Of a stretch of DNA of 64,000 nucleotides, positions 1 through 50,845 are shown one piece after another. The DNA is from Dimorphilus gyrociliatus (Eukaryota; Animalia; Annelida). A program made the position numbers and the translations under genes. The stretch lies in NCBI GenBank assembly GCA_904063045.1, contig CAJFCJ010000070.1, forward strand, positions 17,358 through 81,357. Direction: 5' to 3'. The notes beneath the pieces are model-generated. The model was not told the origin of the DNA. It saw only the letters and a list, made by a program, of their open reading frames with translations, and did no database searches. How positions within the stretch are numbered: the first letter of the stretch is position 1; each line of letters opens with the position of its first letter.

Positions 1-1740
1 TCTTTCATGAAAGTATTCAGAGTGGATGAGTAGTAAATTTCCAAAAGAATTTATGTGATTATCAAATGTGTCACCACAGTATCTACGCCTATGTAAAGAA
101 AAAGTTGGAAAAATGGGAAATGTACATTTCGCATTTATCTTGAAATTGTTACAAAACCTGGTCTCTGAATTTTAGAGAAGAGTAGTATCAGGTGTTCTGA
201 GAAGTTAGGATCAGTTAATTGCATTTCAATATTTTCATCAAAATATAGAAAGCATCCTAGAGATTGAGATGAATAATTGATATAGAATGGGAAAGTGATG
301 ATGATAATCATATATCAATACTTACTGTATTAGGCTGTGAAAACAAGAAATATGGTATTCCATTTTGAGGAGTGATTATTATATTTTCTATATTTATTGG
401 TGAATTATTCAATAACTGAACTTTAAAAATGAATCCATGAGGAATAGTTATAGTTAATGAGCATCCAGTATGGAAATTATTTGGCCAAGACAAATCCAAA
501 AATAAATCTCTATCTTTCAAATTATAAAAAGCGCCGATTGAACAAAAAGAAATTGGTGAAAAAAGAGATTGTTTGGGAAAATTATATTCAGACATCTGAG
601 AAAATCCTTGAATTAGTCTGATTGAATTTTTATTATTGTTAAAATGACTATTTCGAATGGAGAATTTATTAAATGTTCCTTTTAAATCTAATCCTACTTC
701 TGTTGTAGATTCTACTAAAATATTGGATATTTCTAATGATGCATTTGAATTTGATCCAATAATTTGTAAACCACTTGAATTGGATGAAAAATAGGAATCT
801 TTAACAATTGCATAATCATCATTTAAAAATAAATTTAGACCAACACCATGAAAATGGGCATTTTGAATAAGGTTATTTTTCCCATTTACATTTACAATTG
901 CCTCATTGAATACTGTTGGTAAACAGCTGAAAGAAAGGATTGTTGGTAGAACATCTGCATTTACAAATTTTGTACATTGGTTGAATTGAGTAGCATTGTA
1001 GCAATCTAGAATCCAGTCTGTTGTTGAAAAGTTCAATTTTGAGTATGATATTCCAGCTGTTGATTGTGATCGGTATTTAGATTAAAATGTTGGCAAACCA
1101 GTTGATTTATTTTGAAAAATTGTAAAATACTACTGTTTCTTGTTAAATTGATTTGAACAGATTTTTGTAGTCCATCTTCAGAGTTGAATAAGAAAAGTGA
1201 TATGTTAATTTTTTTAAGTTGAAAATGGCTACTTTCTTGCTTCAATTTTGATGTTTTAGTAGTGATTAAAACTCTTTTTTCATTTGGTTTTCCAATATAT
1301 AATTCTCCATTTACTATCAAATGCTTACCTAGATCAAATGATATCTTTGTATTTTGGGATAAAATTTTTAAATCACCATTGATCAGTGTTGTATCTTTGA
1401 TTCTAACATTTCCACTAAGCTCAACTTTTCCTTTGATATAACCTTCTAAGATGGTTGAATCTTTTTGTTTTTTATCAAAATATTTGAGTGTAGTCAATTG
1501 GTGATCTGTATAACTTGGTGATAGATTCACTCTAGCCAACAGGCCATTTCTATTTCCATCATAGACTTTTGAATAAGGATTTTCATGATTAATGTAATTA
1601 TGTGTCATATTGAATTGGCATTGATCAATTGAATTTGTATCACAAATGCATTGGCAATCTATTTCATAGGTACTTTCTCTATTATCCAAAATATTTCTTG
1701 ATAGAAAGGGAAAATTCTGTCCTTCCAGTTTCCATTCCAT
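1..1740 (-). pseudogene. 5' part of the giant cell-surface gene (copy A), continuing left of the window
   Basis: ORFs 1033-1740 and 308-1036 together equal ORF 15671-17104, split by a 1-bp deletion (gattgtgatcgg vs gattgtggatcgg near 1066). The frameshift may be a consensus error. Confidence 0.75.
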
Positions 1741-1831
1741 AATAGACTCAATAAAAACATGGGAATAAACTCATCATTTTACACAATTATTGGTGAACTA
1801 AAGAGAGAGGCTGACTTAATTTCTGTCTATG

Positions 1832-2766
1832 TGTACACATACATTCGTCAGCTATATTCTACAATAGAGAAGTAGTATTGAACCAGTATTGTACTATGCA
1901 GATAGCACTGATAAAGATAAGCAGTAGTGACCTAGTTTCGCATAGGGCAGTGCATACACATTATGCAGTAATAAAACCTATTGAATTATATAAAGAATAT
2001 TTGCTATTTGCAACCTAGCATTAATATTACAATTTATTAATCCATAAATTTATGATTTCGAACTAAAACTAGTTCAATTAATTATCAATTATGCTTAAAT
2101 TCTAAGTTTAGATTATATTCACTATTCAACAGTATTGTATACACAATACTGTTCTTTTTAACATGCATTAATCAGATATACTTCCTCCTTATATGCTGAT
2201 GCTAAATTTACTAGCTCAATCAATTGAATATCATTATTAAGGTAGAATATAAAAACGGTCAAATATACAATCTACATGTTTTCTTGATTGTTGGACTTGT
2301 CCTACTAAAATTGTTACATCTTATGCAACTCTCCAACCTGAGAAATTCAACTATTATTTAGAAGAGGAAAACAATAAAAACATGACCATATTTAGAACTT
2401 TTCTTTGTCTTCAAATGTTACTTTTGTTTTTGTGAACATTGAAATTTGTGAACTATCAACCCTTAAAAGAGTATATAAACCCTACGAAATTAACAGTTGA
2501 TAGTTCAGTTTTCTAACCGTCAGCTAGTTGTTTAAACTAGCTTGTTTAGAACTAGAAGCTCATTTTACTCAATACATATTCTTTGCACGAAATACTGGTG
2601 TTTTGTTAATCAATTTCTACCGAAATTGCCTTTGTTAGACTATTTGTGGACGAACTTTAAAGGTTCTATTTGGACCAGTACTTTGGCAAGTTGGTAAATG
2701 ATTGGAAAGGACGATTACAGTTGTGACGAACCAGAAATTCCTACAATTACAATACAACAAAGTACA
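1832..2766. mobile_element. Solo-LTR-like insertion (935 bp, TG...CA ends, 5-bp TSD)
   Basis: CTATG is duplicated at 1827-1831 and 2767-2771. The insert starts TGTAC and ends GTACA (5-bp inverted termini). Removing it restores the MULE reading frame (TCT GTC TAT GAA AAA). Confidence 0.65.
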
Positions 2767-3123
2767 CTATGAAAAATTATTAAGTGAGAAGAAGATATTG
2801 AGAATGCAAAAAAAAGTCTACACAGAAATTCAAAAGGAACTGTTTTCCATTTGGGAAAACTTTAAAGTTGGTGACATCACAGCAAGTCAACTTGTTGAGA
2901 TGTGTTCTGCTTTATATTATTAAATATGTGCAGTAGTAATTCAACAGTATTAAAAATATCAAAAATGTTCAAGTCATTTGAAAAATTATGTTCTTAAATA
3001 AACTTTTTTACTTGCAATTTCATGGTTTTCATTTTCTCAGATCATTAGTATTTAATCAATTAAGAAAAATATATTAATTCCTTTCATCTTCTCTATTCCT
3101 ATTTAATAATTTTTTTAATACTA

Positions 3124-3279
3124 TGTGGACATTTACTGTTCATTTGTGGACATTTTCTGTCGTCTGTGGATGTGTTCTGTTCATCTGTGGACATTTTCTG
3201 TCCATCTGTGGACGTTTTCTGTCAATTGTGGACGTTTTCTGTTGTGGACGTTTTCTGTTGTGGACGTTTTCTGTTGCCC
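3124..3279. repeat. Tandem array of ~8 degenerate 16-21 bp units (core TGTGGACGTTTTCTG), the MULE terminal repeat
   Basis: Directly visible. Shares the AAAACGTCCAC core with the TIR units at 33019-33122 and 35665-35751. Confidence 0.9.
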
Positions 3280-3508
3280 ACTTATTATAGAAATGGATTA
3301 GAATATGTCTTAAAAAAATAAATGAATTCAAATGGTTTTAAAATATCATTAACATTTAGCAACCAACATTCATCAGAAAAAATCTCTCTTCCTTTTCAAG
3401 ATTTTTAAACATTGTACTATTTCTTTGTAAGTAAACAAAATTTAACTAAAATATGATAACAAAACTCTAGTCATCCATTTTGAGTAGGTTTGACCTATTC
3501 AAAACACT

Positions 3509-3694
3509 ATGGAAACAATGAAACAACACTGGAAGAAAATTGCTGATGGAACAAGAATTTGTGATAAATATTGCATTGGAGATAATTATAATAACTTATT
3601 CATTGGTGGCAAAGTTGGATCTGCTACTATTTTTACCAACATTTCTCTTATCATATCGGCTATTATCACTGCTTTCATAGATTTAAAATTCTAA
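3509..3694 (+). pseudogene. Orphan terminal exon of a Cys-containing, GPI-anchor-like protein (Ly6/quiver-like C-terminus); second copy at 18873-19058
   Basis: ICDKYCIGDNYNN resembles the C-x-x-D-x-C-N end of three-finger domains with the last Cys lost. It is followed by a small-residue site and a hydrophobic tail (GSATIFTNISLIISAIITAF). No upstream exons recognised. Confidence 0.3.
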
Positions 3695-3867
3695 CATAAT
3701 CCTTATAACAATCTTATAACCTAAATCTATTGTTAGTCAATAGTGGGCATTTTTTCACAAGCTGTAACTTGAGAGCCATGGCTATTGTCACCACTTTTTT
3801 AACAATGACTAATCTATATTATTAATATACACAAACTGGGAGCTGTATTTGCAAAGCACAAATAAAA

Positions 3868-6089
3868 ATGGCTACGAAATCTAATGATAATGAAACTGAG
3901 GAATTGACAGCAGGAACTAGTGATTTAAAATTAGATTCTGAGCACTTTGAATGTAAAATAAAAATACCAATAAAACTACTGCTTCATCAAAGGTCAGACA
4001 GAACTGTCCTAGACAAAAAGCGCACACCCTTGGATATAGCTACTGAGGATCATCCTAATGGAGTATTTTTCTACCCACGACTGGTGGACAATGTAATATT
4101 CTTTATATTAACAAGAAATATTTTTATTGTAAAAATTTTATTTATTCTATTCCATTAAATTTATATAGGTTGGAGACACACAACAAACTATTAAATTATA
4201 CAGCGATTGGGATAAAGAAAAAAGAATATTTCATTTGAAAACAATAAATCTCAACTTAGAAAAAAAAAAATTACCATTTTTCCACGTGACTTTAAAGGAA
4301 ATGAGGAGAAACCAGGACTTTTAACTTATAGTAAAAATATATATACAATACCTTTATTTTGAAAAATCAAGAAATGAAGAAAACATTTCTTTATACATTT
4401 AAACAGATGTTTCAAAGGATGGCAAATGTGATTTCGAAAAGTCTCAATTGATCATTGAATGGAATCAAGATACAAGCATGAATGCAACTTTGGAGGAAAA
4501 ATTGGATAGAGTTCGGAATATAAGAATTGGAACATTTAATATTAAAAAGGGAAAGATTGAGCAAGAAATTTCAAAAGTATTAGACATTTCTTTTGGTATT
4601 TTCATCACAATTTAGAATTTCTTTCAGGTCATACAAAATTTTGATTTGCTTGCCTTACAAGAATTGAAAGTCGAGCCTATAGATTATAGAGAAATATTGA
4701 CAAATTTAAATAAAGAGCTAAATGAGAAAAATCAATGTCCATATTACATAATAATTGGCGGAAAATACCACAATGAAAACTCTGCTTGTCTTTACAATAC
4801 AAAATATTTTGTTAATATTTGCAACACTGACAGTAAAGATTTCGATTGTGCAAAAACATTGGAGGGTAAAGGAGAAAATCTTAAAGTGTTGATGTATCAA
4901 TTTTTTCGACCACCACTTATTGTTTCTTTTCAAACAAAATATTGTGAATTGGATACATTTACCTTTATTTCTTTGCATACTAACCCTAATAAGAATGCAA
5001 CAAGTAAACAAATTGAAAATATATTACATTGTTACCCTTCAACAGTTACAGGGATAAACAATCTTTTCAAATTGTCAAAAGATATAACAACAGAATATCA
5101 TGATGAGGTTGTGATTCTCTTGGGAAAAAAATATTAGGTCATTCCATACTATTTTCAAACAGTAAATTGTAATTTTTTTTCAGCATTTTAAAAATTTGAT
5201 TATTGGTGGAGATCTTAATTGGTCTGAACAATATCTTTCACATGAGCCAAATGTACCAGAAGAATTTACTTTACGTACCCCAAAGATCAATACCAATCAA
5301 ATTAAAACAGAAATATATGACAGGTATAATAGTAATTTGTTTAGTAATTTCTCTTATTATTGATATTAAAGGTTATACATATATGGAACTGACTTGGAAA
5401 AAGCTATAATTAGAAATAGTGGAACAGTTTATTACAACATAACATTCAGTGACCACTTTCCAGTTGGATTTGAAATTCAATTCAAGATAAACTTAGAGGA
5501 GAAAATTCCTAAAGGAATAATTCATGTTCCATTTCAAAGTGAAAATCAGTTGAAAAGTTTGCAAGATTATTTTGATCCATTTTACATAATGAAACCTCAC
5601 AATTTGTTTGATGATATGTGGCAAAAAAATGACTACTATACATGGCCAAAGATGTATCAAGTTAAAAAGCATTTTGATGATCATATTTTCAAAAATATTC
5701 TTCGAAGCAATTATAACACATTTTTTATGAAGACTTCAATATATATTGTGGACAATAATAATCATGGAGAATACTCATGTATTACAGATTCGAAAAGAAA
5801 TTGCATAATATTTTACACAGAAGAAAATAGATTTGAAGAAGACTGTAATAAAAAATACAAAGAGGAATTTATAATAAACTTTGTGGAAAATAATCAGCAA
5901 ACTTATAAATATAAATGTAAATGTGCTGCATTCTACAATGAAAAATTTCAGTTATTTAAATGTTACAATATGTCTACAAATGACAAAATCATTTTATATA
6001 AAGATGATAGTAAAATTATTAACCAAGGGAAAATATACTATTTCAATTTTCTGGTACAAAGTGAAATTCCAGATCCTTATGAAAACTAG
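3868..6089 (+). CDS. DNase I-family (EEP) nuclease with N- and C-terminal extensions, copy 1; exons 3868-4092, 4169-4330, 4407-4576, 4628-5107, 5184-5323, 5372-6089 (~631 aa)
   Basis: The spliced product has IRIGTFNI, DLLALQEL, FFRPPLIVSF, FTFISLHT.P, IIGGDLN, IYDR and SDHFPV, the DNase I catalytic motifs in order. All introns are GT-AG with compatible phases except a 1-bp loss in the A-run at 4260-4270, which is intact in copies 2-4. The exon 4 donor (GAG|gttgtg) is weak. Confidence 0.85.
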
Positions 6090-6244
6090 ATGTCAGTTTT
6101 CTTCACTTTGATAAGTACTTTGGATATCATTTGGCAATTGATTTACTAATTTTCTTTTTTCTTGTTATTGCACAATTTTCATTATATTTTATACTTAAAT
6201 AATGTTTGGATGGTTCATTATTATCATTTGGATTGGTATTTTAA

Positions 6245-7045
6245 TTCTGATTCATTTTATGTAAATCTTTTTCAATTGTTTGAAAATGTGCACTTGGAAA
6301 TAATGGCATAATGATATTTAGACCTTAGATATGATAGAACTTTAGAAAGACTTTTCTTTTGTAGCCATGAAAATGGTGGAACATCGAAAAAACTTTTATT
6401 TCCTAGAAATTATAATGGTGGAAGTTTTGAAAGATTTTTATTTCATAGAAATTTTAGTTGTGGGACTTTAGAAAGTCATTTATTTCGCAGGAAATAGATT
6501 CTTTGACCATAACAGATGGTGCCACTTTGGAACTAACAAAGGAACAAACAATATAGAAAAATGCATGTCAAAGTTGTTACATCTTTTTCAAAAACAGATA
6601 TGGAAGAGGCAGGTTTGCTTTTGAAATGCCACATGCTAACCATGTGTGATATAACAGTTTTCATGTTTTTGTTGTTCATGCATTATGAGACTGTTACATT
6701 TCAACTTTGTAATCCTTTGACCAAGTGAACTCAAGCTTTTGGTAAATGTGTAAAAGGAAATACATTTCCCAGCTTGGCAGTTCAGTTCTTTAACCCTTAG
6801 CTGCTTGTTAAAACTTACATGTTTAGAACTAGAAACTCCTTTAATCAATACATATTCTTTGAATGACACTGAACTGGTGTTTGTTGATTGATTTCTACTG
6901 AAATTAAATTTCTTGAGACTATTTGTAGAAGAAGTTGAAAGGTTCTGTTTATGTGAGTATTTTGGTGCATTGATAAATGATTGGAAAGGGTGAATATTGT
7001 TCTGAAGAAGCAGAAATTCCTACAATTACAATACAACAAAGTACA
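6245..7045. repeat. Member of a dispersed repeat family sharing the CAATACAACAAAGTACA terminus; includes a degenerate ~42-bp internal repeat (~6330-6480)
   Basis: Similar to 2400-2766, 21600-22397, 46310-46650 and 61418-61654. The left part recurs inverted at 24198-24634 and 31872-32333. Confidence 0.75.
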
Positions 7046-7267
7046 TTCAAAATTCTTTATGTGGTTTTTAGTTGTTACAGTTATTGAAGCTTAGGCTAAA
7101 ACAAAGCTTGAAAATACGTATCGGATGCTTTAGATGTTAGTAACTTTTAGTAGGCCTTATCACACATTAATTTGGTCTAAAATGCAGTATAAAATATAGT
7201 ATAAGCTTTTCGAAAATTAACCTCTTTTGTTAAAGTTAGATTCAATCACACATGCAAAATATTTTTC

Positions 7268-7432
7268 TATTTCCTAATAATGAGAGGATCATTATCTTTG
7301 CAACAAATCATCAATTGGATTTATTGTCAAAGGGGAAAATTTGGTTCCTTGATGGTACTCTTTTTGAGTGAAACTGTACCCATAATAACATAGTTACCTA
7401 TTACGGGTACATTTTCCCATGGGTATGGTTTC
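7268..7432 (+). mobile_element. MULE transposase scrap followed by a short TIR-like hairpin
   Basis: NNERIIIFATNHQLDLLSKGKIWFLDGT matches ENDRILIFSTTKQIELLSKGKIWFMDGT. It is followed by the inverted pair gaaactgtacccat / atgggtatggtttc, which resembles the TIR motif of the element at 52404-53131. Second copy at 22590-22699. Confidence 0.6.
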
Positions 7433-8151: not shown

Positions 8152-11100
8152 CTAATTGGAAAATCTACCTCTTAAGTATAAACATACAGCTGTAACAATT
8201 ATAGTAATTGTTATTACACCTACACATGATATAATAATTATTAGCGAAATTTTATCATTAACTGTTTTATTGTCCTCTTTTACATTAGGCTCAGTACTGC
8301 TAACACTGTTGATATCAGATGTTGAAGACATTTTATCTGTGAAATCCTCTTCAATAGTTGATTGTTTATTTCTCTTTGTGCTCTTTTCTTCTAATTTATA
8401 TGTAGTCATCTTGCTTGTAGTACTTCTGAAACTTGTCATCTCTTCTTTTGTTATTGTTGTCATATCAACTTCATCAGATGCCTTTTGAACATATACAGTA
8501 AATGAAAAAGTGCTTGAACAAGGAGCATGAGAGTTGTCAAATACAATGACACGATTTTCATACTTTCCAACTGGTAGAGGATATTTTATTGTTACAATCT
8601 CTGATGAATTTTCTTTCAATTCAATTACATTCAATTGTTGTTGAATTGTTTCTAATTTGTAGAGAATTTCACCTTTTGGACCAGAGTCAGCATCTTCTGC
8701 TTCTATTTTAGTCACAAATGATCCTAATGGTGTATTTGAGTTCAATATAATCTTATCATTCAATTGTGAACTCTTGATAACTGCACATTCATTTATATCA
8801 TCAACATTTATAGTCACCAATGTTGAAGAAGATAATTTCAACATTGTATTTTCAATAGCCAATATTTCAACATTATAGGTTCCTGGTTGGAATTTTCCAC
8901 TAGATCTCAACACTCCTGATACTTCATCAATTGTTACAGGAATATCTGAATTGAGTAAACTATAAAATATTCCTTCAGTAGATCCTTTATCTGTATCGTT
9001 TGCTTGAATCTGTACAAGATATTCATTCAAGGAAATCAGTTCATCAACATAAACTGTATAATTTTCTTTCAAAAACTGTGGTCTCTCTGTATTTGGTTGT
9101 ATTTTTTGTGAACAATCTTCACTAGTAAAACCATTCTTACATTGACAAATATTTGGTGCAATGCATACACCATTTCCAGAGCAACCTGATGTGCAAGAAG
9201 TTTCTGAGCATGTTGCTCCAAACCATAGTTGATCACAAGAGCAATTATCAAAAGAAATACAACTGCCATGTCCAGAGCAAGAGTTTAAAGCCTCACATGA
9301 AAATTGAGAGCAATTGTTGCCTGTGAAGCCAAAATTACACTTACATTCAGCAGGTGCAATACGTTTACCATTGACTGAGCATGGTGGATCACACACTGGT
9401 TCACTACAATTTCTGCCAGTAAAACCACTATCGCATAAACACTCAGTGGAATTTATACATATTCCCTGATTGTTGCAGTTATTTAAATTGGGGCAAGTTT
9501 TCAGAAAATCACAAAAATCTCCAAAAAACCCATCATTACATACACATTTGTTTGGTTCTATACACTCTCCATTCAATGAACAATCTTTCTCACATATTGC
9601 TTCTGAACAGGATGTTCCTTCCCATCCTTCTTTACATAAAAGATCTATGCAAGATCCATGTTTTGAGCAATAGTTAACACTCTCACAAGTATATTGCAAG
9701 CAAGTTGTCCCAGTATATCCCATTTCACATCTACATTTATCATGATCAATGCATATACCACCATTTGAGCATCCATTGGAACAAATTGCTTTTTCTGAAC
9801 AATTAATTTTTGTCTAACCTTCTTCACATTCACAAATATTTGTTTTTACACAAATTCCTCTTGATGAACAGTTTCCTTAACAGATTGCTTTATTATCACA
9901 TTTTGATCCTTCATAGCCTTTGAAACAAGAACAAAATCCTTCAGAACAATTACCATAAATACATTCGCCACATACACCAGTCTCACAATAATCTCCAGAC
10001 CATCCATCAATACATACACACGCTTTATCCTTACACACTCCTCTATTTGAGCATTGATTCTGACATTGTTTAGATGTCAAGGTGGCTTGTTTTGCTATTG
10101 AAGGATCATCAGACATAACAACATCATAAACACATCTATTTTTATCATCTTGATTGACATCATCAGCTGAACATAGCTGTGATGCAATATCAATTTTTGA
10201 TTGGTCAATATTGTCAAGATTATAAATAGGTTTATGAGCAGTATCTGTGTATCTAGAGTCCATTATATCATCTTTGTGAAAATTGGATAATTTTTGTGAC
10301 CAAGAGTTAAAAGTGCCACCATCTTTCCAAAAAGTATTTGTCATTCTCCATGATTCCACAAAGTCAATGTGAGAAGTAAAATTTTCACCATTTGGACCTT
10401 TGAAGTCATCACTTTCAATGTCATTCATTAATCCACAAATCCCAGAAGTTTTATTAAACATTTCATCATTAGCAATAATTGACAAACTTAAAAACTGATT
10501 TTGCATTTTAGGGCTATGTGATGTTACAACTGTAATTGATGCTCCACCAATCATTTTTACAAGTACCATAAGAACTGTAGGATCTTGTTTCTGTGAAATT
10601 TGAGAATTGGGTGAAATATCAAGACGAATTGTTCCATTATCAAATGTCATTGAATGATTATGACCTAAATTGGTAAGAAGAACACCATCTAACCTTACCA
10701 GAGGAAAGTCATTAGATGCTACATTTGCTCTACTAGATATTGTTAAGATGGAAGATTTTCCTATTTTAATTGCAATTGCTCCAATAAATGATGTTGTTTT
10801 ATGAGCAAAAAATCTGTATTGATATGAGATAACAGGTGAGATACAACCCCAAAATTGATCAATTCCAAAAAAGTCAAATGCTCTACCATCAATTGTTTCT
10901 AAATGAGGATCACCCCATGTGTTTCTTGGTATACGTATTTCACAGGCAGAACCAATCCACTGTCTAAAACAAATACACCTGGATTGACAGTCATTCTCTG
11001 CTTGACAAATGCCATGACCATTACAGTTGGCAGGTTTACAAGCTGGTTGCTCACATTCCCTTCCTTTTCTACCTGGTAAACAGATACCATTAATTCCACA

Positions 11101-14100
11101 CTGATTTCTACAAATGCACTCTCCAGAATGTGATCTTTTTGCTATCAAATTTTTAGAACATTTTGAGCAACTTTGACAATGACATAATCCATTTACAAGT
11201 CGTGATATAGAACCATCAGGACAGACACAGGAACATCCATCCTGCCCATTAAGAATACGATTTGCTGATCCATCAGGACAGCAAAAGCATTCTCCAGAAT
11301 TGAATTTGAAACTATTCTCTCTCTTTCCTTTATCACATTTACAAGCACACATGCATTGATTATTTTTCTTGTTGCGAAATCCATAGCTAATCCCATTCTT
11401 AGAAAAACATGTACAAATATCATATTCTCCTCCATTTGTTTGACTATATGCTTGGCATTTACTGCAAAAAAAAAAAACAAAAATGAATTATTTTGATTAA
11501 AAAGCTTAAAAATTGTGGAGCTGTTTAAACATAGGCAACCAATTGGCTTTACCTAAACAAAATGAGTTGTTTGTCAAGGCAATTTTCACAAAATAGATTA
11601 TTATTGTAATTCAAAAGAGATATCTTTCCATTAATTTCCATTCTATTGAAATTTGCACTAGCTGTATCAGGTCTATCATAGTTGCATATATTTTCATCAG
11701 CATATCCACTTTTGATTTCTAGTTCTTTGGTTATTTTCATATTTATGGTAGATTGTTGTTTATTTAGAGGAGCAGAATTTTGTATGTAAATACCTATGAT
11801 TACAAAAAAATATATTTAAAAGATACTCTAAACTTGATATAAATATTCTATATTTGCTATTTAAAACTTACCAGCTAGCCAATTATTTACAGATTCCAAA
11901 TTTCCATTTTTACTAAAATATTTCTCTGTGTCTTTATTGATATCTTCTTCATTGTCCAATGGCCATTTTAATAATAGTGTTGCACTGAATGGCATATTTA
12001 TTTTTCCATATCCATTTCCTGTCAACTTAAATTCACATTTGTTCTTTTTCTTTTCTGTTCTTGTCCTAAAGCTTTCTAATTTATTTTTATCATAAAATAT
12101 AAAGCCACTGTTAGAATCACTAGAAAGTATACATTGTTTTGAATTAAACATTAATTTGCCTCTTGATTGAATAGATATTGGTCCTATTGAAAATTCTGTT
12201 AAATAGATTACACCAGGAATTTTTAATCCATTAATTACATAATTAAATAAATATTTATTGCTGTTTTTCATGTTTAATCCATCAGTTTTATATAGGTCTA
12301 TTGTTTTAAGGATTGAAATGTCATAGTCAATATCAATATCTAGCTTTGTGGTCAATGATGGTTTTATATATTTAATTCCATAATTTGGTAAAATTTTTGT
12401 TTCCAAAGTTGTCCGAATTGATGTTGTATACTTTGACACGATTGAAAGTTTCAAATCTGGAATCTGTTTTAAAGAAAATTTTTTATCCTAGCTCTGAAAA
12501 CCTACTTACTTAAAGCAATTGAATTGAATTTAGGAAATTCAATTGTACATTCTTTACAAATAGATAAATAGATATTCAGATTCCAAACTTACAGTAGAAA
12601 TCTTCTGTTACCACAAAAAGAACAATGCAAAATATACTTACATTTGTATTAATTTTTGGAAAATTGCTGTGTATGGAAAGATTCTCATTTAAATTATTAC
12701 CATTACTACCACCAGTACTATTCTTTGTAATGCTATTATAGTTGATAGTGCTTGTATCTAAATCTTCAGTTAATGATCCTAGATTAATCAATTCTACAGC
12801 TTTCCATCCATTCAATAATGATTTAGAACTGATAACATAACCTAAAGAACTTATTGTATCTTTTTTGCCAATAATTAAATCATCATTCTTCAACAGATCA
12901 TCACTTTGTGCATAGTACAAACTTTCATGAATATCATCAGTCCAACAAGAAAGTTGATGAGACCAATTTTTTATTTGATCAAAATTTTTACTTTCAATAT
13001 TTGTACTTGTACAATAATCAAGTCTTGATTGTAGAAAAGAGTCTTTGTTAATTGTTTTATGATACTTTACTACTCTTTGCAGATAACCTAAAGATTTTTC
13101 TACAATAATGATATCCTCATTTTGATATTGCTCCGTTGTTTTAGCAATAATATAATAAGACCATACAGTTCTCCCTTCATAAGCGTATTCTTCTCCCAAA
13201 CATTTCATATTTATTTCTTGAGTAATGCTCTTCCTTGGTTGTGAAGATTGGATAAATATTGACAACTGTCTTTTTGAAGGAGTTAAATGCCATATATTCA
13301 ATTTATTTTTATCCTTAAATATTGCAGTTGTTTTGAAATGACCATATTTAAGTAAGTCCAATGGATAAATTTCATATCCAACCATAATCTTATAATTGGA
13401 GAATGTATTTGTAGAATTAACAATTCTATGATAAACTCTTTCATTATTCTCACTGGTTATTATTTGTTGAGTATAAGTAGATGTATGGTTGTCATCCCCT
13501 TCTAGTATAAATATGTCATATTCTCCATTCAAATCTCCATTCAATTTTTCTTCACTTTTACATTTAAAAAGCTTTGATTTTATTTTAATAACATTATCTT
13601 TTAGTTTTATATCATTTATTCTCTCTTCTGAAGTCAATTGTGGAATGGGAAAGCCATTTTTACATTTATTCTCATCCCATATTTTACAACCAGATAATGA
13701 TGTATTTTTAAAGCATTTTTTGATGTCTGTACATTGTTGACAAGCTTCATTATTGGTGTGAGAGCAATAAGACTCTTCACAATTAAAAGTTAGTATCTGC
13801 TTAGAGCAAGAATTTGGTTCTACACTTAAACAATTCCAATAGAACCAATCAGGACATGACTTGTATGCTTTATCAGGCATTCCTGGAATACATTTTTGAG
13901 TAGTGTCACACCATCCACAACCCTCTCTCCTAGTACAATGTTTACAAGATGAATAGCGAGGACATTTTGATCTTGAGCATCTTTTTCCATACCATCCAGG
14001 ATAACATTTACAAACATTTGGGCCTATACATGTACCATGATTATTACAATTTCCAACATCTTTACAAGTGAATTCTGAACAGTCAGACTTAGTCCATCCA

Positions 14101-17100
14101 GAATTACAGAGGCAAGTTAAACCAACACATTGTCCCCTTTTAAAGCAGTTATTTTTACACAATCTATCATGAAATTCTTGACAAATAAAAGGTTTAATCA
14201 CCTTATTATCTATATAATTTGTATCTCTTTGCTCAGGATATCCACTATTTGCAGTCCATATATCAGTTGTTGTGAATTTTTGTTCATTTTTACTTGATTC
14301 CGTTATTCTAAGTATATCTTTAATATTTTTATTAAGTAAATGGTTTGCTGATAGTAATTGTGAAAAATGATTCAAACACCATTTTTTAGCATTGTTGAAA
14401 GTCAATGGTCCAAAATGAAAGTAATAGCAAGATTTTTCAATATATTTCCATCCAGTTAGACCACAAAATGAGTTTAGATGATTATTTTTAGGGAATTGTT
14501 GAAGATTTTGGGAATAATCAAGAAGTTGAAGAGAAGAATCATACCTGCCATCATAGATTCTCTTATGAATTTCACTTGAATGAGTTTCACCCCACCAATT
14601 ATGAGAACAGTCATTCAAAATTAGACCACTTGAGTTTGTAAAACAAGCTATTTGAAAAGAATTAACATCATCATTCAAAACATTTGAACATTGATCAAAA
14701 GTTGTTTGCTTTAGAAATATTCCCAGTTCAACATTATTATTGTTAGAAATTTTCAATAGAGAATTTTGAAAATTGTCATTTTGAGAAAATCTACATTGAG
14801 TTATATAAATGCTCAAATTATCATTTTTCATAAAAATATTTTCATTATTAATTAGATTGAATGGAGTTGATTTTGAATTTTGAATATTTACATTTTTCAT
14901 ATAGACTGATGATCTTTTAGTTGACATGTAAATTGAATGTTTAACAGATGAAAATAGCAAATTTTCAAAATGAAAATAGTTTTTATGCTCTGAGGTTTGA
15001 TAATTGAGATATATAGCTGTTGATTTTTCATTAGTAAATGAATTGTTTACAATACAATAATCTCTATGTTTGTCATCATCATCATTGCAAAATATGAATT
15101 GTGGATCTCTAAAACCTACACACCTTAGTAATTCAATGCGAAGAGTTATATTAAAATTTCTATTTTCCAATTCATAAATTGGAATATCATAATATTTCCA
15201 TATATATTCTTTAGTGGCTGAGTATTCTCTGATGATTTCTGTTTGTTTATCATCAGATTTTATTAATACAGTAATTCTACCATCACCATTAAGCAGATAA
15301 AACCGAAAGTAGCAATAATTTTGGTTAGAAACTAGATTTTGGTGATAGATATCAATAAAACGTCTTTCATGAAAGTATTCAGAGTGGATGAGTAGTAAAT
15401 TTCCAAAAGAATTTATGTGATTATCAAATGTGTCACCACAGTATCTACGCCTATGTAAAAGAAAAAGTTGGAAAAATGGGAAATGTACATTTCGCATTTA
15501 TCTTGAAATTGTTACAAACCTGGTCTCTGAATTTTAGAGAAGAGTAGTATCAGGTGTTCTGAGAAGTTAGGATCAGTTAATTGCATTTCAATATTTTCAT
15601 CAAAAATATAGAAAGCATCCTAGAGATTGAGATGAATAATTGATATAGAATGGGAAAGTGATGATGATAATCATATATCAATACTTACTGTATTAGGCTG
15701 TGAAAACAAGAAATATGGTATTCCATTTTGAGGAGTGATTATTATATTTTCTATATTTATTGGTGAATTATTCAATAACTGAACTTTAAAAATGAATCCA
15801 TGAGGAATAGTTATAGTTAATGAGCATCCAGTATGGAAATTATTTGGCCAAGACAAATCCAAAAATAAATCTCTATCTTTCAAATTATAAAAAGCGCCGA
15901 TTGAACAAAAAGAAATTGGTGAAAAAAGAGATTGTTTGGGAAAATTATATTCAGACATCTGAGAAAATCCTTGAATTAGTCTGATTGAATTTTTATTATT
16001 GTTAAAATGACTATTTCGAATGGAGAATTTATTAAATGTTCCTTTTAAATCTAATCCTACTTCTGTTGTAGATTCTACTAAAATATTGGATATTTCTAAT
16101 GATGCATTTGAATTTGATCCAATAATTTGTAAACCACTTGAATTGGATGAAAAATAGGAATCTTTAACAATTGCATAATCATCATTTAAAAATAAATTTA
16201 GACCAACACCATGAAAATGGGCATTTTGAATAAGGTTATTTTTCCCATTTACATTTACAATTGCCTCATTGAATACTGTTGGTAAACAGCTGAAAGAAAG
16301 GATTGTTGGTAGAACATCTGCATTTACAAATTTTGTACATTGGTTGAATTGAGTAGCATTGTAGCAATCTAGAATCCAGTCTGTTGTTGAAAAGTTCAAT
16401 TTTGAGTATGATATTCCAGCTGTTGATTGTGGATCGGTATTTAGATTAAAATGTTGGCAAACCAGTTGATTTATTTTGAAAAATTGTAAAATACTACTGT
16501 TTCTTGTTAAATTGATTTGAACAGATTTTTGTAGTCCATCTTCAGAGTTGAATAAGAAAAGTGATATGTTAATTTTTTTAAGTTGAAAATGGCTACTTTC
16601 TTGCTTCAATTTTGATGTTTTAGTAGTGATTAAAACTCTTTTTTCATTTGGTTTTCCAATATATAATTCTCCATTTACTATCAAATGCTTACCTAGATCA
16701 AATGATATCTTTGTATTTTGGGATAAAATTTTTAAATCACCATTGATCAGTGTTGTATCTTTGATTCTAACATTTCCACTAAGCTCAACTTTTCCTTTGA
16801 TATAACCTTCTAAGATGGTTGAATCTTTTTGTTTTTTATCAAAATATTTGAGTGTAGTCAATTGGTGATCTGTATAACTTGGTGATAGATTCACTCTAGC
16901 CAACAGGCCATTTCTATTTCCATCATAGACTTTTGAATAAGGATTTTCATGATTAATGTAATTATGTGTCATATTGAATTGGCATTGATCAATTGAATTT
17001 GTATCACAAATGCATTGGCAATCTATTTCATAGGTACTTTCTCTATTATCCAAAATATTTCTTGATAGAAAGGGAAAATTCTGTCCTTCCAGTTTCCATT

Positions 17101-17104
17101 CCAT
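8152..17104 (-). pseudogene. Giant multi-exon cell-surface protein gene (bark-beetle-like SRCR/parallel beta-helix/CUB, C-type lectin, EGF, PSI, VWD, EGF array, 2 cadherin-like repeats, Ser/Thr stalk, TM), 5'-truncated and with in-frame stops
   Basis: ORFs 15671-17104, 12576-15497, 11861-12454, 11549-11740, 9877-11352 and 8152-9723 are linked by GT-AG introns (e.g. 15620-15688, 11794-11871, 11462-11552). Motifs: LVCQHF (SRCR-like), RYCG (CUB), CLTGWKYIEKSCYYF...AKKWC (CTL), CKHCTRREGCGWC (PSI), TWGDPHLETIDG (VWD), ANDTDKG / AEDADSGPKGEI (cadherin), IIIISCVGVITITIIV (TM). Stops TAA 9877-9879 and TAG 9814-9816 lie in the continuous EGF frame. No signal peptide. Confidence 0.8.
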
Positions 17105-18644
17105 AATAGACTCAATAAAAACATGGGAATAAACTCATCATTTTACACAATTATTGGTGAACTAAAGAGAGAGGCTGACTTAATTTCTGTCTATGTGTAC
17201 ACATACATTCGTCAGCTATATTCTACAATAGAGAAGTAGTATTGAACCAGTATTGTACTATGCAGATAGCACTGATAAAGATAAGCAGTAGTGACCTAGT
17301 TTCGCATAGGGCAGTGCATACACATTATGCAGTAATAAAACCTATTGAATTATATAAAGAATATTTGCTATTTGCAACCTAGCATTAATATTACAATTTA
17401 TTAATCCATAAATTTATGATTTCGAACTAAAACTAGTTCAATTAATTATCAATTATGCTTAAATTCTAAGTTTAGATTATATTCACTATTCAACAGTATT
17501 GTATACACAATACTGTTCTTTTTAACATGCATTAATCAGATATACTTCCTCCTTATATGCTGATGCTAAATTTACTAGCTCAATCAATTGAATATCATTA
17601 TTAAGGTAGAATATAAAAACGGTCAAATATACAATCTACATGTTTTCTTGATTGTTGGACTTGTCCTACTAAAATTGTTACATCTTATGCAACTCTCCAA
17701 CCTGAGAAATTCAACTATTATTTAGAAGAGGAAAACAATAAAAACATGACCATATTTAGAACTTTTCTTTGTCTTCAAATGTTACTTTTGTTTTTGTGAA
17801 CATTGAAATTTGTGAACTATCAACCCTTAAAAGAGTATATAAACCCTACGAAATTAACAGTTGATAGTTCAGTTTTCTAACCGTCAGCTAGTTGTTTAAA
17901 CTAGCTTGTTTAGAACTAGAAGCTCATTTTACTCAATACATATTCTTTGCACGAAATACTGGTGTTTTGTTAATCAATTTCTACCGAAATTGCCTTTGTT
18001 AGACTATTTGTGGACGAACTTTAAAGGTTCTATTTGGACCAGTACTTTGGCAAGTTGGTAAATGATTGGAAAGGACGATTACAGTTGTGACGAACCAGAA
18101 ATTCCTACAATTACAATACAACAAAGTACACTATGAAAAATTATTAAGTGAGAAGAAGATATTGAGAATGCAAAAAAAAGTCTACACAGAAATTCAAAAG
18201 GAACTGTTTTCCATTTGGGAAAACTTTAAAGTTGGTGACATCACAGCAAGTCAACTTGTTGAGATGTGTTCTGCTTTATATTATTAAATATGTGCAGTAG
18301 TAATTCAACAGTATTAAAAATATCAAAAATGTTCAAGTCATTTGAAAAATTATGTTCTTAAATAAACTTTTTTACTTGCAATTTCATGGTTTTCATTTTC
18401 TCAGATCATTAGTATTTAATCAATTAAGAAAAATATATTAATTCCTTTCATCTTCTCTATTCCTATTTAATAATTTTTTTAATACTATGTGGACATTTAC
18501 TGTTCATTTGTGGACATTTTCTGTCCGTCTGTGGATGTGTTCTGTTCATCTGTGGACATTTTCTGTCCATCTGTGGACGTTTTCTGTCAATTGTGGACGT
18601 TTTCTGTTGTGGACGTTTTCTGTTGTGGACGTTTTCTGTTGCCC
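17102..18644 (+). mobile_element. Duplicate MULE 3' remnant with nested solo-LTR-like insert (17196-18130) and terminal repeat array (~18489-18644)
   Basis: Essentially identical to 1738-3279, including the CTATG TSD. Confidence 0.85.
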
Positions 18645-19231
18645 ACTTATTATAGAAATGGATTAGAATATGTCTTAAAAAATAAATGAATTCAAATGGT
18701 TTTAAAATATCATTAACATTTAGCAACCAACATTCATCAGAAAAAATCTCTCTTCCTTTTCAAGATTTTTAAACATTGTACTATTTCTTTGTAAGTAAAC
18801 AAAATTTAACTAAAATATGATAACAAAACTCTAGTCATCCATTTTGAGTAGGTTTGACCTATTCAAAACACTATGGAAACAATGAAACAACACTGGAAGA
18901 AAATTGCTGATGGAACAAGAATTTGTGATAAATATTGCATTGGAGATAATTATAATAACTTATTCATTGGTGGCAAAGTTGGATCTGCTACTATTTTTAC
19001 CAACATTTCTCTTATCATATCGGCTATTATCACTGCTTTCATAGATTTAAAATTCTAACATAATCCTTATAACAATCTTATAACCTAAATCTATTGTTAG
19101 TCAATAGTGGGCATTTTTTCACAAGCTGTAACTTGAGAGCCATGGCTATTGTCACCACTTTTTTAACAATGACTAATCTATATTATTAATATACACAAAC
19201 TGGGAGCTGTATTTGCAAAGCACAAATAAAA

Positions 19232-21468
19232 ATGGCTACGAAATCTAATGATAATGAAACTGAGGAATTGACAGCAGGAACTAGTGATTTAAAATTAGAT
19301 TCTGAGCACTTTGAATGTAAAATAAAAATACCAATAAAACTACTGCTTCATCAAAGGTCAGACAGAACTGTCCTAGACAAAAAGCGCACACCCTTGGATA
19401 TAGCTACTGAGGATCATCCTAATGGAGTATTTTTCTACCCACGACTGGTGGACAATGTAATATTCTTTATATTAACAAGAAATATTTTTATTGTAAAAAT
19501 TTTATTTATTCTATTCCATTAAATTTATATAGGTTGGAGACACACAACAAACTATTAAATTATACAGCGATTGGGATAAAGAAAAAAGAATATTTCATTT
19601 GAAAACAATAAATCTCAACTTAGAAAAAAGAAAAATTACCATTTTTCCACGTGACTTTAAAGGAAATGAGGAGAAACCAGGACTTTTAACTTATAGTAAA
19701 AATATATATACAATACCTTTATTTTAAAAAATCAAGAAATGAAGAAAACATTTCTTTATACATTTAAACAGATATTTCAAAGGATGGCAAATGTGATTTC
19801 GAAAAGTCTCAATTGATCATTGAATGGAATCAAGATACAAGCATGAATGCAACTTTGGAGGAAAAATTGGATAGAGTTCGGAATATAAGAATTGGAGCAT
19901 TTAATATTAAAAAGGGAAAGATTGAGCAAGAAATTTCAAAAGTATTAGACATTTCTTTTGGTATTTTCATCACAATTTAGAATTTCTTTCAGGTCATACA
20001 AAATTTTGATTTGCTTGCCTTACAAGAATTGACAGCTGACCCTATAGATTATGGAAAAATATTGAAAAATTTAAATGAACAGCTAAATGAGAAAAATCAA
20101 TGTCCATATTACATAATAATTGGCGGAAAATTCCACAATGAAAACTCTGCTTATCTTTACAATACAAAATATTTTGTTAATATTTGCAACACTGACAGTA
20201 AAGATTTGGATTGTGCAAAAACATGGGAGGCTGAAGAAGAAAATCATAAAATGTTGATGCATCAATTTTTTCGACCACCACTTATTGTTTCTTTTCAAAC
20301 AAAATATTGTGAATTGGATACATTTACCTTTATTTCTTTGCATACTAACCCTAATAAGAATGCAAAAAATAAAAAAATTGGAAATATATTACATTGTTAC
20401 CCTTCAACAGTTACAGGGATAAACAATCTTTTCAAATTGTCAAAAGATATAACAACAGAATATCATGATGAGGTTGTGATTCTCTTGGGAAAAAAATATT
20501 AGGTCATTCCATACTATTTTCAAACAGTAAATTGTAATTTTTTTCAGCATTTTAAAAATTTGATTATTGGTGGAGATCTTAATTGGTCTGAACAATATCT
20601 TTCACATGAGCCAAATGTACCAGAAGAATTTACTTTACGTACCCAAAGATCAATACCAATCAAATTAAAACAGAAATATATGACAGTATAATAGTAATTT
20701 GTTTAGTAATTTCTCTTATTATTGATATTAAAGTTATACATATATGGAACTGACTTGGAAAAAGCTATAATTAGAAATAGTGGAACAGTTTATTACAACA
20801 TAACATTCAGTGACCACTTTCCAGTTGGATTTGAAATTCAATTCAAGATAAACTTAGAGGAGAAAATTCCTAAAGGAATAATTCATGTTCCATTTCAAAG
20901 TGAAAATCAGTTGAAAAGTTTGCAAGATTATTTTGATCCATTTACATAATGAAACCTCACAATTTTTGATGATATGTGGCAAAAAAATGACTATACATGG
21001 CCAAAGATGTATCAAGTTAAAAAGCATTTTGATAATCATATTTTCAAAAATATTCTTCAAAGCAATTATAACACATTTTTTATGAAGACTTCAATATATA
21101 TTGTGGACAATAATAATCATGGAGAATACTCATGTATTACAGATTCGAAAAGTAATTGCATAATATTTTACACAGAAGAAAATAGATTTGAAGAAGACTG
21201 TTGTCAAAAATACAAAGAGGAATTTATAATACAATTTGTGGAAAATATTCAGGAAACTTATAAATATAAATGTAAATGTGCTGCATTCTACAATGAAAAA
21301 TTTCAGTTATTTAAATGTTACGATATGTCTACAAATGACAAAATCATTTTATATAAAGATGATAGTAAAATTATTAACCAAGGGAAAATATACTATTTCA
21401 ATTTTCTGGTACAAAGTGAAATTCCAGATCCTTATGAAAAGAAAAGATGTCAGTTTTCTTCACTTTGA
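19232..21468 (+). CDS. DNase I-family nuclease, copy 2 (exons 1-4 intact; several 1-bp deletions in exons 5-6, probably consensus errors near the contig end)
   Basis: Same exon structure and catalytic motifs as copy 1. Exon 2 (19533-19695) is 163 bp and in frame. Differences after 20600 are mostly single-base deletions in short runs. Confidence 0.75.
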
Positions 21469-21599
21469 TAAGTACTTTGGATATCATTTGGCAATTGATT
21501 TACTAATTTTCTTTTTTCTTGTTATTGCACAATTTTCATTATATTTTATACTTAAATAATGTTTGGATGGTTCATTATTATCATTTGGATTGTATTTTA

Positions 21600-22397
21600 A
21601 TTCTGATTCATTTTATGTAAATCTTTTTCAATTGTTTGAAAAGTGCACTTGGAAATAATGCATAATGATATTTAGACCTTAACTATGATAGAACTTTAGA
21701 AAGACTTTTCTTTTGTAGCCATGAAAATGGTGGAACATCGAAAAAGCTTTTATTTCCTAGAAATTATAATGGTGGAAGTTTTGAAAGATTTTTATTTCAT
21801 AGAAATTTTAGTTGGGGACTTTAGAAAGTCATATTATTCGCAGGAAATAGATTCTTTGACCATAACAGATGGTGCCACTTTGGAACTAACAAAGGAACAA
21901 ACAATATAGAAAAATGCATGTCAAAGTTGTTACATCTTTTTCAAAAACAGATATGGAAGAGCAGGTTTGCTTTTGAAATGCCACATGCTAACCATTGTGA
22001 TATAACAGTTTTCATGTTTTTGTTGTTCATGCATTATGAGACTGTTACATTTCAACTTTGTAATCCTTTGGCCAAGTGAACTCAAGCTTTTGGAAATGTG
22101 TAAAAGGAAATACATTTCCCAGTTGGCAGTTCAGTTCTTTAACCCTTAGCTGCTTGTTAAAACTTACATGTTTAGAACTAGAAACTCCTTTAATCAATAC
22201 ATATTCTTGAATGACACTGACACTGAACTGGTGTTTGTTGATTGATTTCTACTGAAATTAAATTTCTTGAGACTATTTGTAGAAGAAGTTGAAAGGTTCT
22301 GTTTATGTGAGTATTTTGGTGCATTGATAAATGATTGGAAGGGTGAATATTGTTCTGAAGAAGCAGAAATTCCTACAATTAAATACAACAAAGTACA
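21600..22397. repeat. Duplicate of the dispersed repeat at 6245-7045
   Basis: Collinear with 6245-7045; ends caacaaagtaca. Confidence 0.75.
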
Positions 22398-29806: not shown

Positions 29807-29938
29807 ATGCCAATTGTCCAATTGACACATTTTGACTGTTTAAATATGCATTATTCCTTTTGCCATTTTTTCAATTTCCCCTCTGCTAACAATTTTTTAA
29901 GGTAAAAAAGCTCTTTAATGTTTTACTAATCAACTTTT

Positions 29939-50779: not shown

Positions 50780-50845
50780 AGGTATGGTGATATTAATGGC
50801 GGACAAGAATATGCAAAACATCATATCGGTCCACTTAGTTGTTCC

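Follow-up and report, generated by a model that had tools for sequence, protein, structure and literature searches.

The analyzed window, a 64,000-nt stretch of DNA from Dimorphilus gyrociliatus, contains four copies (c1–c4) of an intron-bearing, signal-less gene with a DNase I fold, a small tandem family whose members are spread over two recent segmental duplications. Transposable-element copies in the window match loci of GCA_904063045.1 at 99.5% identity. The gene model comprises ~630 codons and five introns of 47–76 bp each, and the encoded protein consists of a beta-rich N-terminal domain (~190 aa), the DNase I domain and a C-terminal domain (~200 aa), in that order. The original prediction had counted three copies; a fourth, c4, was identified on the minus strand, and its exon 4 is identical to that of c3. 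In window coordinates, the features are as follows.

1–7349: duplication unit containing c1; its twin, containing c2, lies at 15363–22699 (self-alignment)
3868–6089, plus strand: copy c1, from the four-copy alignment and translation; exons E1 3868–4092, E2 4169–4330, E3 4407–4576, E4 4628–5107, E5 5184–5323, E6 5372–6089
4628–5107, plus strand: c1 exon 4, which contains all three hypervariable clusters and codes for the active-site residues Glu (LQE) and His (SLHT) as well as for the FFRPP loop
19232–21468, plus strand: copy c2, with exon 4 at 19993–20472
23306–23454: fragment of a leucine-rich repeat (LRR) gene (tblastn)
24674–25356: remainder of c3 exon 6, the counterpart of the displaced c4 piece
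25465–31876: duplication unit containing c3; its twin, containing c4, lies at 33584–40017 (self-alignment)
27632–29188, minus strand: copy c3, exon 1 through the first 67 nt of exon 6, with exon 4 at 27963–28442
29944–31112: second LRR copy, upstream of c3 (tblastn)
32368–33011, minus strand: displaced remainder of c4 exon 6, encoding the end of the nuclease domain and the C-terminal domain
33012–35758: 2,747-bp DNA transposon of the Mutator-like (MULE) type, inserted in c4 exon 6 upstream of the SDHFP catalytic motif
~35759–37315, minus strand: copy c4, exon 1 through the first 67 nt of exon 6, with exon 4 at 36090–36569
38077–39255, minus strand: ribonuclease-inhibitor-type LRR ORF of 393 aa, the immediate upstream neighbor of c4 and in the same orientation

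A DNase I-type domain with variable surroundings

With respect to fold, the family profile matched DNase1L3 (2.8e-15) and DNase I (5e-9) in the PDB. An AF2 model of P0002, a 35%-identical paralog and not itself a window protein, reached a pTM of 0.82 with pLDDT values of ~85–95 across most of the nuclease domain, and the best Foldseek matches to this model in the PDB were DNase I and DNase1L3 structures (4AWN, 7KIU and 2DNJ; TM 0.75–0.77, E 1e-14). The profile matches and the predicted fold, a DNase I-type four-layer alpha/beta sandwich, place the window domain in the DNase I family. Pfam PF03372, however, scored P0002 at 20.7 bits (cutoff 24.5), and Pfam searches with single exons returned no match. 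The window gene shares with the DNase I/DNASE1L3 family (EEP superfamily; PDB 4AWN, 7KIU, 2DNJ and 1ATN) not only the fold but also the order and identity of the motifs (FNI, LQE, the E78 equivalent, LH, GDLN, YDR and SDHFP). It differs from that family in lacking a signal peptide, in carrying N- and C-terminal domains without detectable relatives, in an extended loop after the catalytic His and in falling below the PF03372 cutoff.

The catalytic and metal-binding residues of DNase I have been assigned roles previously (PMC8002113), and in our alignment N7, E39, E78, H134, D168, N170, D212 and D251/H252 all have equivalents that do not vary between c1 and c2; D251/H252 have been lost from the reading frame of c3 and c4 through the MULE insertion. 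Around this fixed core, differences between copies concentrate in segments adjoining the Glu and His of the active site and in the loop leading to FFRPP, as well as in the C-terminal domain and at the N-terminus. The three clusters described in the original prediction (QEL-KVE/TAD/PVS, LEGKG/WEAEE/WETEK and TSKQIEN/KNKKIGN/TSNRIEK) and the invariance of the catalytic motifs are as claimed. Its placement of the changes on the protein surface is likewise borne out by alignment to the P0002 model and its secondary structure, in which the variable residues fall mostly in loops and in surface helices after the strands bearing the catalytic Glu and His.

The flanking domains are less familiar. On reading the translation, no signal peptide was seen; the N-terminus (MATKSNDNETEELTAGTSD) is hydrophilic and leads into the additional ~190-aa domain. 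An AFDB cluster search matched the nuclease domain and not the N-terminal domain, an ESM Atlas search with the C-terminal domain gave no credible relative (best score 0.66), and a single-sequence AF2 model of the latter had a pLDDT of 39.7. Among 1.84 billion protein representatives, the relatives found were four D. gyrociliatus proteins and one canonical triple DNase I (P0003), with no others. A word-based protein search with P0002 and with the family profile matched the queries alone and yielded no close paralogs that could have served as conversion donors. The nuclease family appears from these searches to be lineage-specific, known from D. gyrociliatus only. The supplements of the D. gyrociliatus genome paper mention neither these genes nor DNase, and a limited search of the literature turned up no DNase I family reported to behave as these copies do.

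Replacement changes and their arrangement in blocks

In exon 4, c1 and c2 differ at 22 codons (23 nt), c2 and c3 at 27 codons (34 nt) and c1 and c3 at 32 codons (41 nt), with not one purely synonymous codon in any pair; our recount reproduced the coordinates and codon counts first reported for the c1/c2 and c2/c3 pairs. Nei–Gojobori path counting does place 1–2.5 synonymous steps in exon 4, concealed within multi-hit codons. The same bias had been asserted for exons 1, 3, 5 and 6, and it is found there (8/8, 2/2 and 5/5 changes nonsynonymous in exons 1, 3 and 5, and 12/12 between c1 and c2 in exon 6) as well as in exon 2 (1/1). The sole purely synonymous codon change of the data set is GAC to GAT at 5631, in the c3/c4 tails. 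Over the whole coding sequence, nonsynonymous and synonymous differences (Nd/Sd) number 36/1 for c1–c2 and 52/1.2 for c1–c3. Counted along the tree for all exons and copies, 82 changes are nonsynonymous and 4 synonymous, where 18% synonymous would be expected (binomial p=1.8e-4). Changes are distributed 42:28:16 by codon position (chi-square p=0.003), and no stop codon has arisen by substitution in any copy.

In terms of selection, GY94 pairwise omega values were 8.0, 13.6 and 5.6 (LRT p=0.004, 1e-4 and 0.002, respectively), these tests resting on three distinct sequences. Nonsynonymous divergence exceeds the pooled divergence of silent sites, introns and flank 3.2-fold for c1–c2 (p=1.3e-4) and 5.8-fold for c1–c3 (p=2e-7). 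The proposal of diversifying selection thus agrees with every test run, each giving dN/dS significantly above 1. The amino-acid-changing pattern among the copies thus goes beyond chance and genuinely bears the mark of selection for a diverse protein. In a second recent pair, the distant paralogs L001 and L003 (99.3% identical), differences are evenly spread, with no excess in exons.

The introns were said to be nearly identical, and so they are: across 327 bp in total we find two substitutions (4115 and 4361) and one change in the length of a T run, as against 41 substitutions in the 480 bp of exon 4, so that introns are more conserved than coding sequence. Their use as the neutral level understates neutral divergence, in that the 3′ flank at 6328–6863 carries 10 substitutions between c1 and c2. 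Since the divergent tract of this pair includes a 1.3%-diverged 3′ flank, omega measured against all neutral classes is ~3–6 and not infinite.

The substitutions are also unevenly placed along the duplicated units. Of the 49 substitutions that separate the c1 and c2 units, exons 3–6 carry 38, the 3′ flank 10 and an intron one, and the opening 4,360 bp have none; 4.36 kb without divergence thus precede a divergent tract of 2.5 kb that extends into 3′ non-coding DNA. The c3 and c4 units differ by eight substitutions over 6.4 kb, five of them inside 36 bp of exon 5, where c3 has three private nonsynonymous changes (27796–27811) and c4 two (35956 and 35958), forming two tight clusters (3 changes per 16 bp and 2 per 3 bp). 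Site patterns between copies fall in blocks that imply conflicting relationships among them (runs test p=2e-4), suggesting that the differences are partly shuffled between copies; among the patches are a c1-specific block at 4668–4895 and a c2 patch at 5001–5016. The blocks, along with the absence of c1/c2 substitutions in the 4.36 kb upstream, indicate that more than independent point substitution has separated the copies since duplication. The original interpretation is supported in part, as regards selection and membership of the DNase I family. Judging from this arrangement, patch transfer from other, unseen members of the family must have delivered most of the differences.

Could such transfer account for the data without selection? 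Patches of older, ordinarily diverged paralogs would then have been copied into the recent duplicates, and the clustering in exons would reflect nothing but where the tracts happened to land. The blocky site patterns, the abrupt change from undiverged upstream DNA to a divergent tract that takes in non-coding flank, and the tight c3/c4 clusters are all consistent with this account. Ordinary donors, however, would have supplied silent and intron differences in proportion, whereas replacement sites within the tracts are 3–6 times more diverged than silent sites and introns, 82 of the 86 coding changes are nonsynonymous, and intron 3 is unchanged although it lies within a c1-specific tract. The scenario that had been named as a possible refutation, in which conversion confined to exons draws on old paralogs of normal synonymous divergence, is not what we see, the converted patches being nearly free of silent change. 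Conversion accounts for the delivery of the changes but not for the excess of replacements, and we regard an explanation by conversion alone as unlikely.

Transposon insertions, frameshifts and transcripts

The MULE in c4 is bounded by a 9-bp target-site duplication (TATTACAAC) and has inverted subterminal repeats (GGAGAAAACGTCCAC), as read from the junction sequences. Its internal ORF matches Pfam FLYWCH (1.8e-7) and MULE (0.0024, below the curated cutoff). The same insertion is present in c3 in partly deleted form (~25357–27631), and both DNA and RNA contigs pass from exon 6 into the element, with loose ends at 20799. Though split ahead of the last catalytic motif, c3 and c4 are transcribed and spliced. 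Because they are disrupted before the SDH motif, selection on these two copies as nucleases is doubtful; conversion fits better than such selection as the origin of their five nonsynonymous differences, which are found despite the transposon. These copies may serve as donors or relics only.

As assembled, the reading frames of c1 and c2 are interrupted as well. Copy c1 lacks one G at 4265 (exon 2) that c2–c4 have, which shifts the frame. Copy c2 has deletions of 1–3 bp at the c1-equivalent positions 5278, 5323, 5371, 5580, 5605–6 and 5632–4; the second group produces two in-frame stops past the nuclease domain, after residue 462. We considered whether the frameshifts of c2 compensate one another, as selection for an open frame would favor, and rejected this, given the two stops in the second shifted stretch, the absence of the deletions from all contigs and their likeness to the indel noise found throughout the duplicated DNA. 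In otherwise identical duplicated DNA, indels relate to substitutions as 7:0 and 25:8, and most indels adjoin short homopolymer runs. The frameshifts resemble long-read assembly errors, and c1 and c2 are for this reason probably intact.

The assembly was built from pooled animals, many females, with PacBio RS II, PBcR, Quiver, Pilon and HaploMerger2 (PMC7854359), so that some of the "copies" could be haplotypes. An artefact of this kind, in which the apparent paralogs are alleles of pooled worms or mis-polished collapsed repeats, is in keeping with that pipeline and with the implausible indel ratios. It is also in keeping with the Logan contigs of three runs, in which neither the c2 deletions nor the c2-specific KNKKIGN patch was seen, contigs being informative about presence and not about absence. 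Long-read errors, however, take the form of indels and not of clustered nonsynonymous substitutions. Moreover, RNA and DNA contigs from independent runs contain the c3/c4-type exon 4, the c1-type 3′ patch and one c2-specific site, RNA contigs of run X2 carry the c3 letters of exon 5, and a spliced contig of run X3 has two other exon 5 letters that fit the c4 type. The duplication units have unique sequence between them and different flanks and, even if the copies were alleles, a pattern confined to dN would still demand balancing or diversifying selection. On this evidence an artefact seems improbable.

Decay of all four copies as drifting pseudogenes would explain the frameshift in c1, the stops in c2 and the MULE in c3 and c4. 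Drift, however, should fall evenly on codon positions and introns, unlike the 42:28:16 distribution and the 4 synonymous changes among 86; substitution has created no stop, the small indels are of the type left by long-read assembly, and correctly spliced transcripts are present, all five introns being confirmed by GT..AG joints, with spliced RNA contigs confirming those of c2–c4. General decay is accordingly very unlikely. Equally poor in prospect is local mutagenesis, that is, targeted hypermutation or templated diversification of the coding part with the truncated copies as donor bank, for although the tight multi-nucleotide clusters, the retention and transcription of truncated c3 and c4 and the far greater change in the gene than in its duplicated surroundings would suit it, the base changes show no obvious single-class bias on inspection and mutation alone cannot spare silent sites. 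We know of no germline system of this type in animals.

Probable selection and conversion, and a possible molecular conflict

We infer that diversifying selection combined with gene conversion in a lineage-specific DNase I-fold family is the probable explanation of the locus. The whole family would be under positive selection at surface residues around the substrate-binding face, selected variants would move between copies as short gene-conversion or recombination patches, and the same exchange would keep introns and silent sites homogeneous. The likeliest driver would be a fast-evolving protein partner or target of the nuclease, either an inhibitor or factors associated with foreign or selfish DNA, and the nuclease may be caught in an arms race, whether against an inhibitor or against a pathogen.

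One neighbor invites consideration as such a partner. The LRR ORF matched ribonuclease inhibitor in the PDB (phmmer, 6e-23), and self-alignment places it with the nuclease gene in an 8.1-kb tandem unit, the LRR gene being co-duplicated with c3 and c4. This is reminiscent of the RNase A family and its LRR ribonuclease inhibitor, in that an inhibitor-type LRR gene lies upstream of both c3 and c4 and was duplicated along with them. A similar parallel may be drawn with DNase I and G-actin, as the actin-contact residues H44 and D53 of DNase I lie on a helix to which one hypervariable segment aligns. Unlike in those nuclease–inhibitor pairs, any partnership in the window is putative, and c1 and c2 have no LRR neighbor. 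At the other paralog loci, an LRR gene occurs within 10 kb at one of four and is absent from three, so that synteny does not support a conserved LRR–nuclease cassette. The two LRR copies have no substitutions between them, whereas the adjoining nuclease copies differ; in this small sample there is no signal of co-variation.

More ambitiously, the signal-less DNase I-fold proteins could be cytoplasmic effector nucleases in a conflict, acting in innate immunity or as part of a selfish toxin–antidote element. The co-duplicated LRR protein would then be their inhibitor or guard, and germline conversion, drawing patch by patch on a store of truncated, transcribed copies, would diversify the surfaces flanking the active site. 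We consider this scheme doubtful; if true, it would describe an animal nuclease family evolving like antigen-variation or NLR loci.

The closest parallels to the substitution pattern come from venoms. Nakashima and colleagues reportedly described, in 1993 and 1995, accelerated evolution of crotaline snake venom phospholipase A2 isozymes with conserved introns, and accelerated evolution is likewise said to have been found by Duda and Palumbi in 1999 for the conotoxin multigene families of Conus. Both systems, like the window copies, involve tandem paralogs in which exons for the mature protein outpace introns and UTRs, dN exceeds dS, and the surface varies around a fixed catalytic or structural core. 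Those proteins are toxins, secreted to act on an ecological target that is known, whereas the window nuclease is apparently intracellular, no signal peptide being visible by reading; the window family also differs in its clear patchwise exchange and its transposon-truncated members.

Enzymes of the DNase I family are usually regarded as conserved housekeeping or waste-disposal nucleases and, to our knowledge, canonical DNase I genes do not form hypervariable multicopy families. A lineage-specific and probably intracellular tandem branch, with omega well above 1 in the surroundings of its active site, points instead to molecular conflict in a spiralian animal; little is known of the immune and selfish-element biology of that group. 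Being compact, expressed and open to experiment in a laboratory annelid, the locus also serves as a clear natural case in which silent sites evolve in concert and replacement sites diversify.

Gene copies and family membership

Self-alignment of the window, which is AT-rich (GC ~28%), recovered the DNase I-like gene four times, with short introns in each case: the three copies described in the original prediction (c1, c2 and c3) and one further copy, c4. The copies lie in two segmental duplications, both recent.

Gene copies and duplicated units
3868-6089, +, c1 (exons E1 3868-4092, E2 4169-4330, E3 4407-4576, E4 4628-5107, E5 5184-5323, E6 5372-6089)
19232-21468, +, c2
27632-29188, -, c3
35759-37315, -, c4
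1-7349 and 15363-22699, duplicated c1/c2 units, 98.9% identity
25465-31876 and 33584-40017, duplicated c3/c4 units, 99.5% identity

Spliced contigs from sequencing runs X2 and X3 confirm all five introns, each with a GT..AG joint. A search of 1.84 billion protein cluster representatives with exon 4 gave only five matches, four from D. gyrociliatus (35-50% identity) and one a canonical triple DNase I. A profile search of protein collections added no relatives to these five, the window's own nuclease genes were not found in the collections searched, and Pfam returned no match for single exons. Against solved structures, the family profile matched DNase1L3 (2.8e-15) and DNase I (5e-9), and these were also the best structural matches (TM 0.75-0.77) of the AF2 model (pTM 0.82) of P0002, a D. 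gyrociliatus paralog protein with 35% identity. Specifically, the motifs FNI, LQE, the E78 equivalent, LH, GDLN, YDR and SDHFP align with N7, E39, E78, H134, D168/N170, D212 and D251/H252, residues with described roles in DNase I (PMC8002113). Judged by sequence profile and predicted fold, the window genes would belong to the DNase I family. The encoded protein has no signal peptide, and the nuclease domain is flanked by domains of ~190 aa (N-terminal side) and ~200 aa (C-terminal side), for which sequence and structure searches detected no relatives.

Replacement change, probable gene conversion and variable surfaces

Differences between the copies were almost exclusively amino acid replacements.

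Exon 4 differences (c3 and c4 are identical)
c1/c2, 22 differing codons, 23 nt, 0 synonymous codons
c2/c3, 27 differing codons, 34 nt, 0 synonymous codons
c1/c3, 32 differing codons, 41 nt, 0 synonymous codons

The c1/c2 codons and nucleotides, the c2/c3 codons and the zero synonymous count are exactly those first predicted, and the same pattern, as had been claimed for exons 1, 3, 5 and 6, extends to the other exons, with nonsynonymous shares of 8/8 (E1), 1/1 (E2), 2/2 (E3), 5/5 (E5) and, for c1 vs c2, 12/12 (E6). Over all copies, a minimum-change count gave 82 nonsynonymous vs 4 synonymous changes, where 18% synonymous is expected (p=1.8e-4), and coding changes were split 42:28:16 by codon position. 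Pairwise GY94 maximum likelihood yielded omega values of 8.0 (c1-c2, p=0.004), 13.6 (c1-c3, p=1e-4) and 5.6 (c2-c3, p=0.002). The replacement-dominated pattern is real, and its statistical support is solid given the small number of sequences.

With respect to the neutral baseline, the introns are indeed nearly unchanged (2 substitutions in 327 bp), but the original prediction overlooked the 3' flank (6328-6863), where 10 of the 49 substitutions that separate the c1 unit from the c2 unit are found. The others fall in exons 3-6 (38) and intron 2 (1). The initial 4,360 bp carry no substitution (divergence <0.07%, 95% bound), so that the units have a very recent common history upstream, but they also contain a 2.5-kb tract of different history. 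Inside it, replacement divergence is 3.2x that of pooled silent, intron and flank sites (p=1.3e-4); for c1 vs c3 the ratio is 5.8x (p=2e-7).

Site patterns among the copies are blocky (runs test, p=2e-4).

Blocks of shared site patterns
3759-4223, sites specific to c3/c4 only
4361-4895, c1-specific sites predominate and c2 equals c3
4983-5274, c3/c4-specific sites and four c2-specific sites

Over 6.4 kb, 8 substitutions separate c3 from c4. Five of these, all nonsynonymous, form two tight clusters in exon 5 that together span 36 bp. Such blocks are the mark left by gene conversion in patches, or by recombination, with family members outside the window. Conversion alone had been named as an explanation that would undo the case for selection, and conversion patches are present; the family-level replacement excess nonetheless stands, since the patches are nearly free of silent change. 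Gene conversion is a route of delivery rather than an alternative to selection.

Variable residues were placed by alignment to the predicted structure of P0002. They map to a loop and surface helix directly after the catalytic-Glu strand, the equivalent of the DNase I helix with actin contacts H44 and D53 (PMC8002113); to a hairpin and loop ahead of the R111 equivalent; to an extended loop and helix after the catalytic His, in a low-confidence part of the model; and to the segment following GDLN. Core strands show few changes.

Neighbouring genes and state of the copies

Neighbouring features
8152-17104, -, large multi-exon gene (teneurin-type EGF, cadherin and VWD) between c1 and c2
308-1740, duplicate of its 5' part, within the segmental duplication
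38077-39255 (393 aa), 29944-31112 and 23306-23454 (fragment), -, ribonuclease-inhibitor/NLR-type LRR ORF
33012-35758 and 25357-27631, Mutator-like element (2.7 kb) common to c3 and c4, inserted in exon 6 shortly ahead of the SDHFP motif
47862-48527, +, ORF with trypsin-like serine protease domain (Pfam 4.8e-34)

Copies of the co-duplicated neighbours (the 5' part of the EGF/cadherin/VWD gene and the LRR gene) show no substitutions, and the 5' copy at 1-1740 has only a frame-breaking indel. In a second recent pair, the more distant paralog loci L001 and L003 (99.3% identity), differences are evenly spread with no exon excess. The LRR gene lies immediately upstream of c3 and of c4, forming an 8.1-kb tandem unit with the nuclease. 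With no LRR gene beside c1 or c2, and one within 10 kb at a single one of four other paralog loci, a fixed nuclease-inhibitor cassette is not supported. In run X2, one RNA contig of 3.6 kb continues from spliced exons 1-4 of the c3/c4 type into ~2.6 kb of sequence on the upstream side, a length that would extend to the LRR ORF; this suggests overlapping or read-through transcription. Elsewhere, 22000-24000 and 50000-52000 have ~19% GC and ORFs overlapping on both strands, as is typical of low-complexity AT-rich repeats.

The Mutator-like element has a 9-bp target-site duplication (TATTACAAC), inverted subterminal repeats, subterminal arrays of GGAGAAAACGTCCAC repeats, and an internal ORF matching Pfam FLYWCH, with a weak, sub-threshold match to MULE transposase. 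Terminal repeats similar to those of the element also form an array upstream of c1 (3120-3290) and, by duplication, of c2. The window's transposon copies match loci in the D. gyrociliatus assembly GCA_904063045.1 at 99.5% identity. The c3/c4 reading frame stops 38 codons inside the element; RNA contigs show that both copies are transcribed and spliced despite the insertion, and those with c3-specific or c4-type exon-5 letters extend into it.

In the assembly, exon 2 of c1 is one G short and c2 carries six small deletions; one group among these leads to stops downstream of the nuclease domain. We do not trust these indels, given indel:substitution ratios of 7:0 and 25:8 in duplicated stretches where substitutions are absent or few, the many 1-bp indels between duplicates (1-7349/15363-22699 and 25465-31876/33584-40017) mostly beside short homopolymer runs, the PacBio RS II/PBcR/Quiver/Pilon assembly from pooled females (PMC7854359), and contigs of three runs that contain the undeleted forms only. 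The 1-bp indels are probably residual long-read error in this assembly's repeats, and frameshifts in duplicated genes of the D. gyrociliatus assembly should be treated with caution. Separately, run X1 contigs of exon 1 (c2 19211-19343) include two forms, one c3/c4-type and one with four sites unlike c1/c2 (including A>T at 19305), with no exact c1/c2-type contig listed for that run, which hints at at least one additional copy or haplotype. In the 273-Mb contig set of run X6 (2024, same species label), the gene occurs only as 23-47 nt fragments of 92% likeness. That sample may lack the family or have a very different version of it; alternatively, a difference in label or in data type may be responsible.

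Probable selection and gene conversion in the family

The best explanation, which we regard as fairly probable, is that two processes act together in this lineage-specific DNase I-like family: diversifying selection on the surfaces surrounding the active site, and gene conversion. Selection would diversify these surfaces, and conversion would homogenize silent sites and shuffle selected patches between copies. The intense diversifying selection originally proposed is partly supported (omega 5.6-13.6; 82 vs 4 changes), but independent point substitutions since duplication do not by themselves fit the conversion mosaic. Venom and immune gene families are known to show phenomena of this kind. The selection may plausibly reflect an arms race, either with an inhibitor or with a pathogen. 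For an annelid family of signal-less proteins with the DNase I fold, such a pattern is, as far as our searches reach, new.
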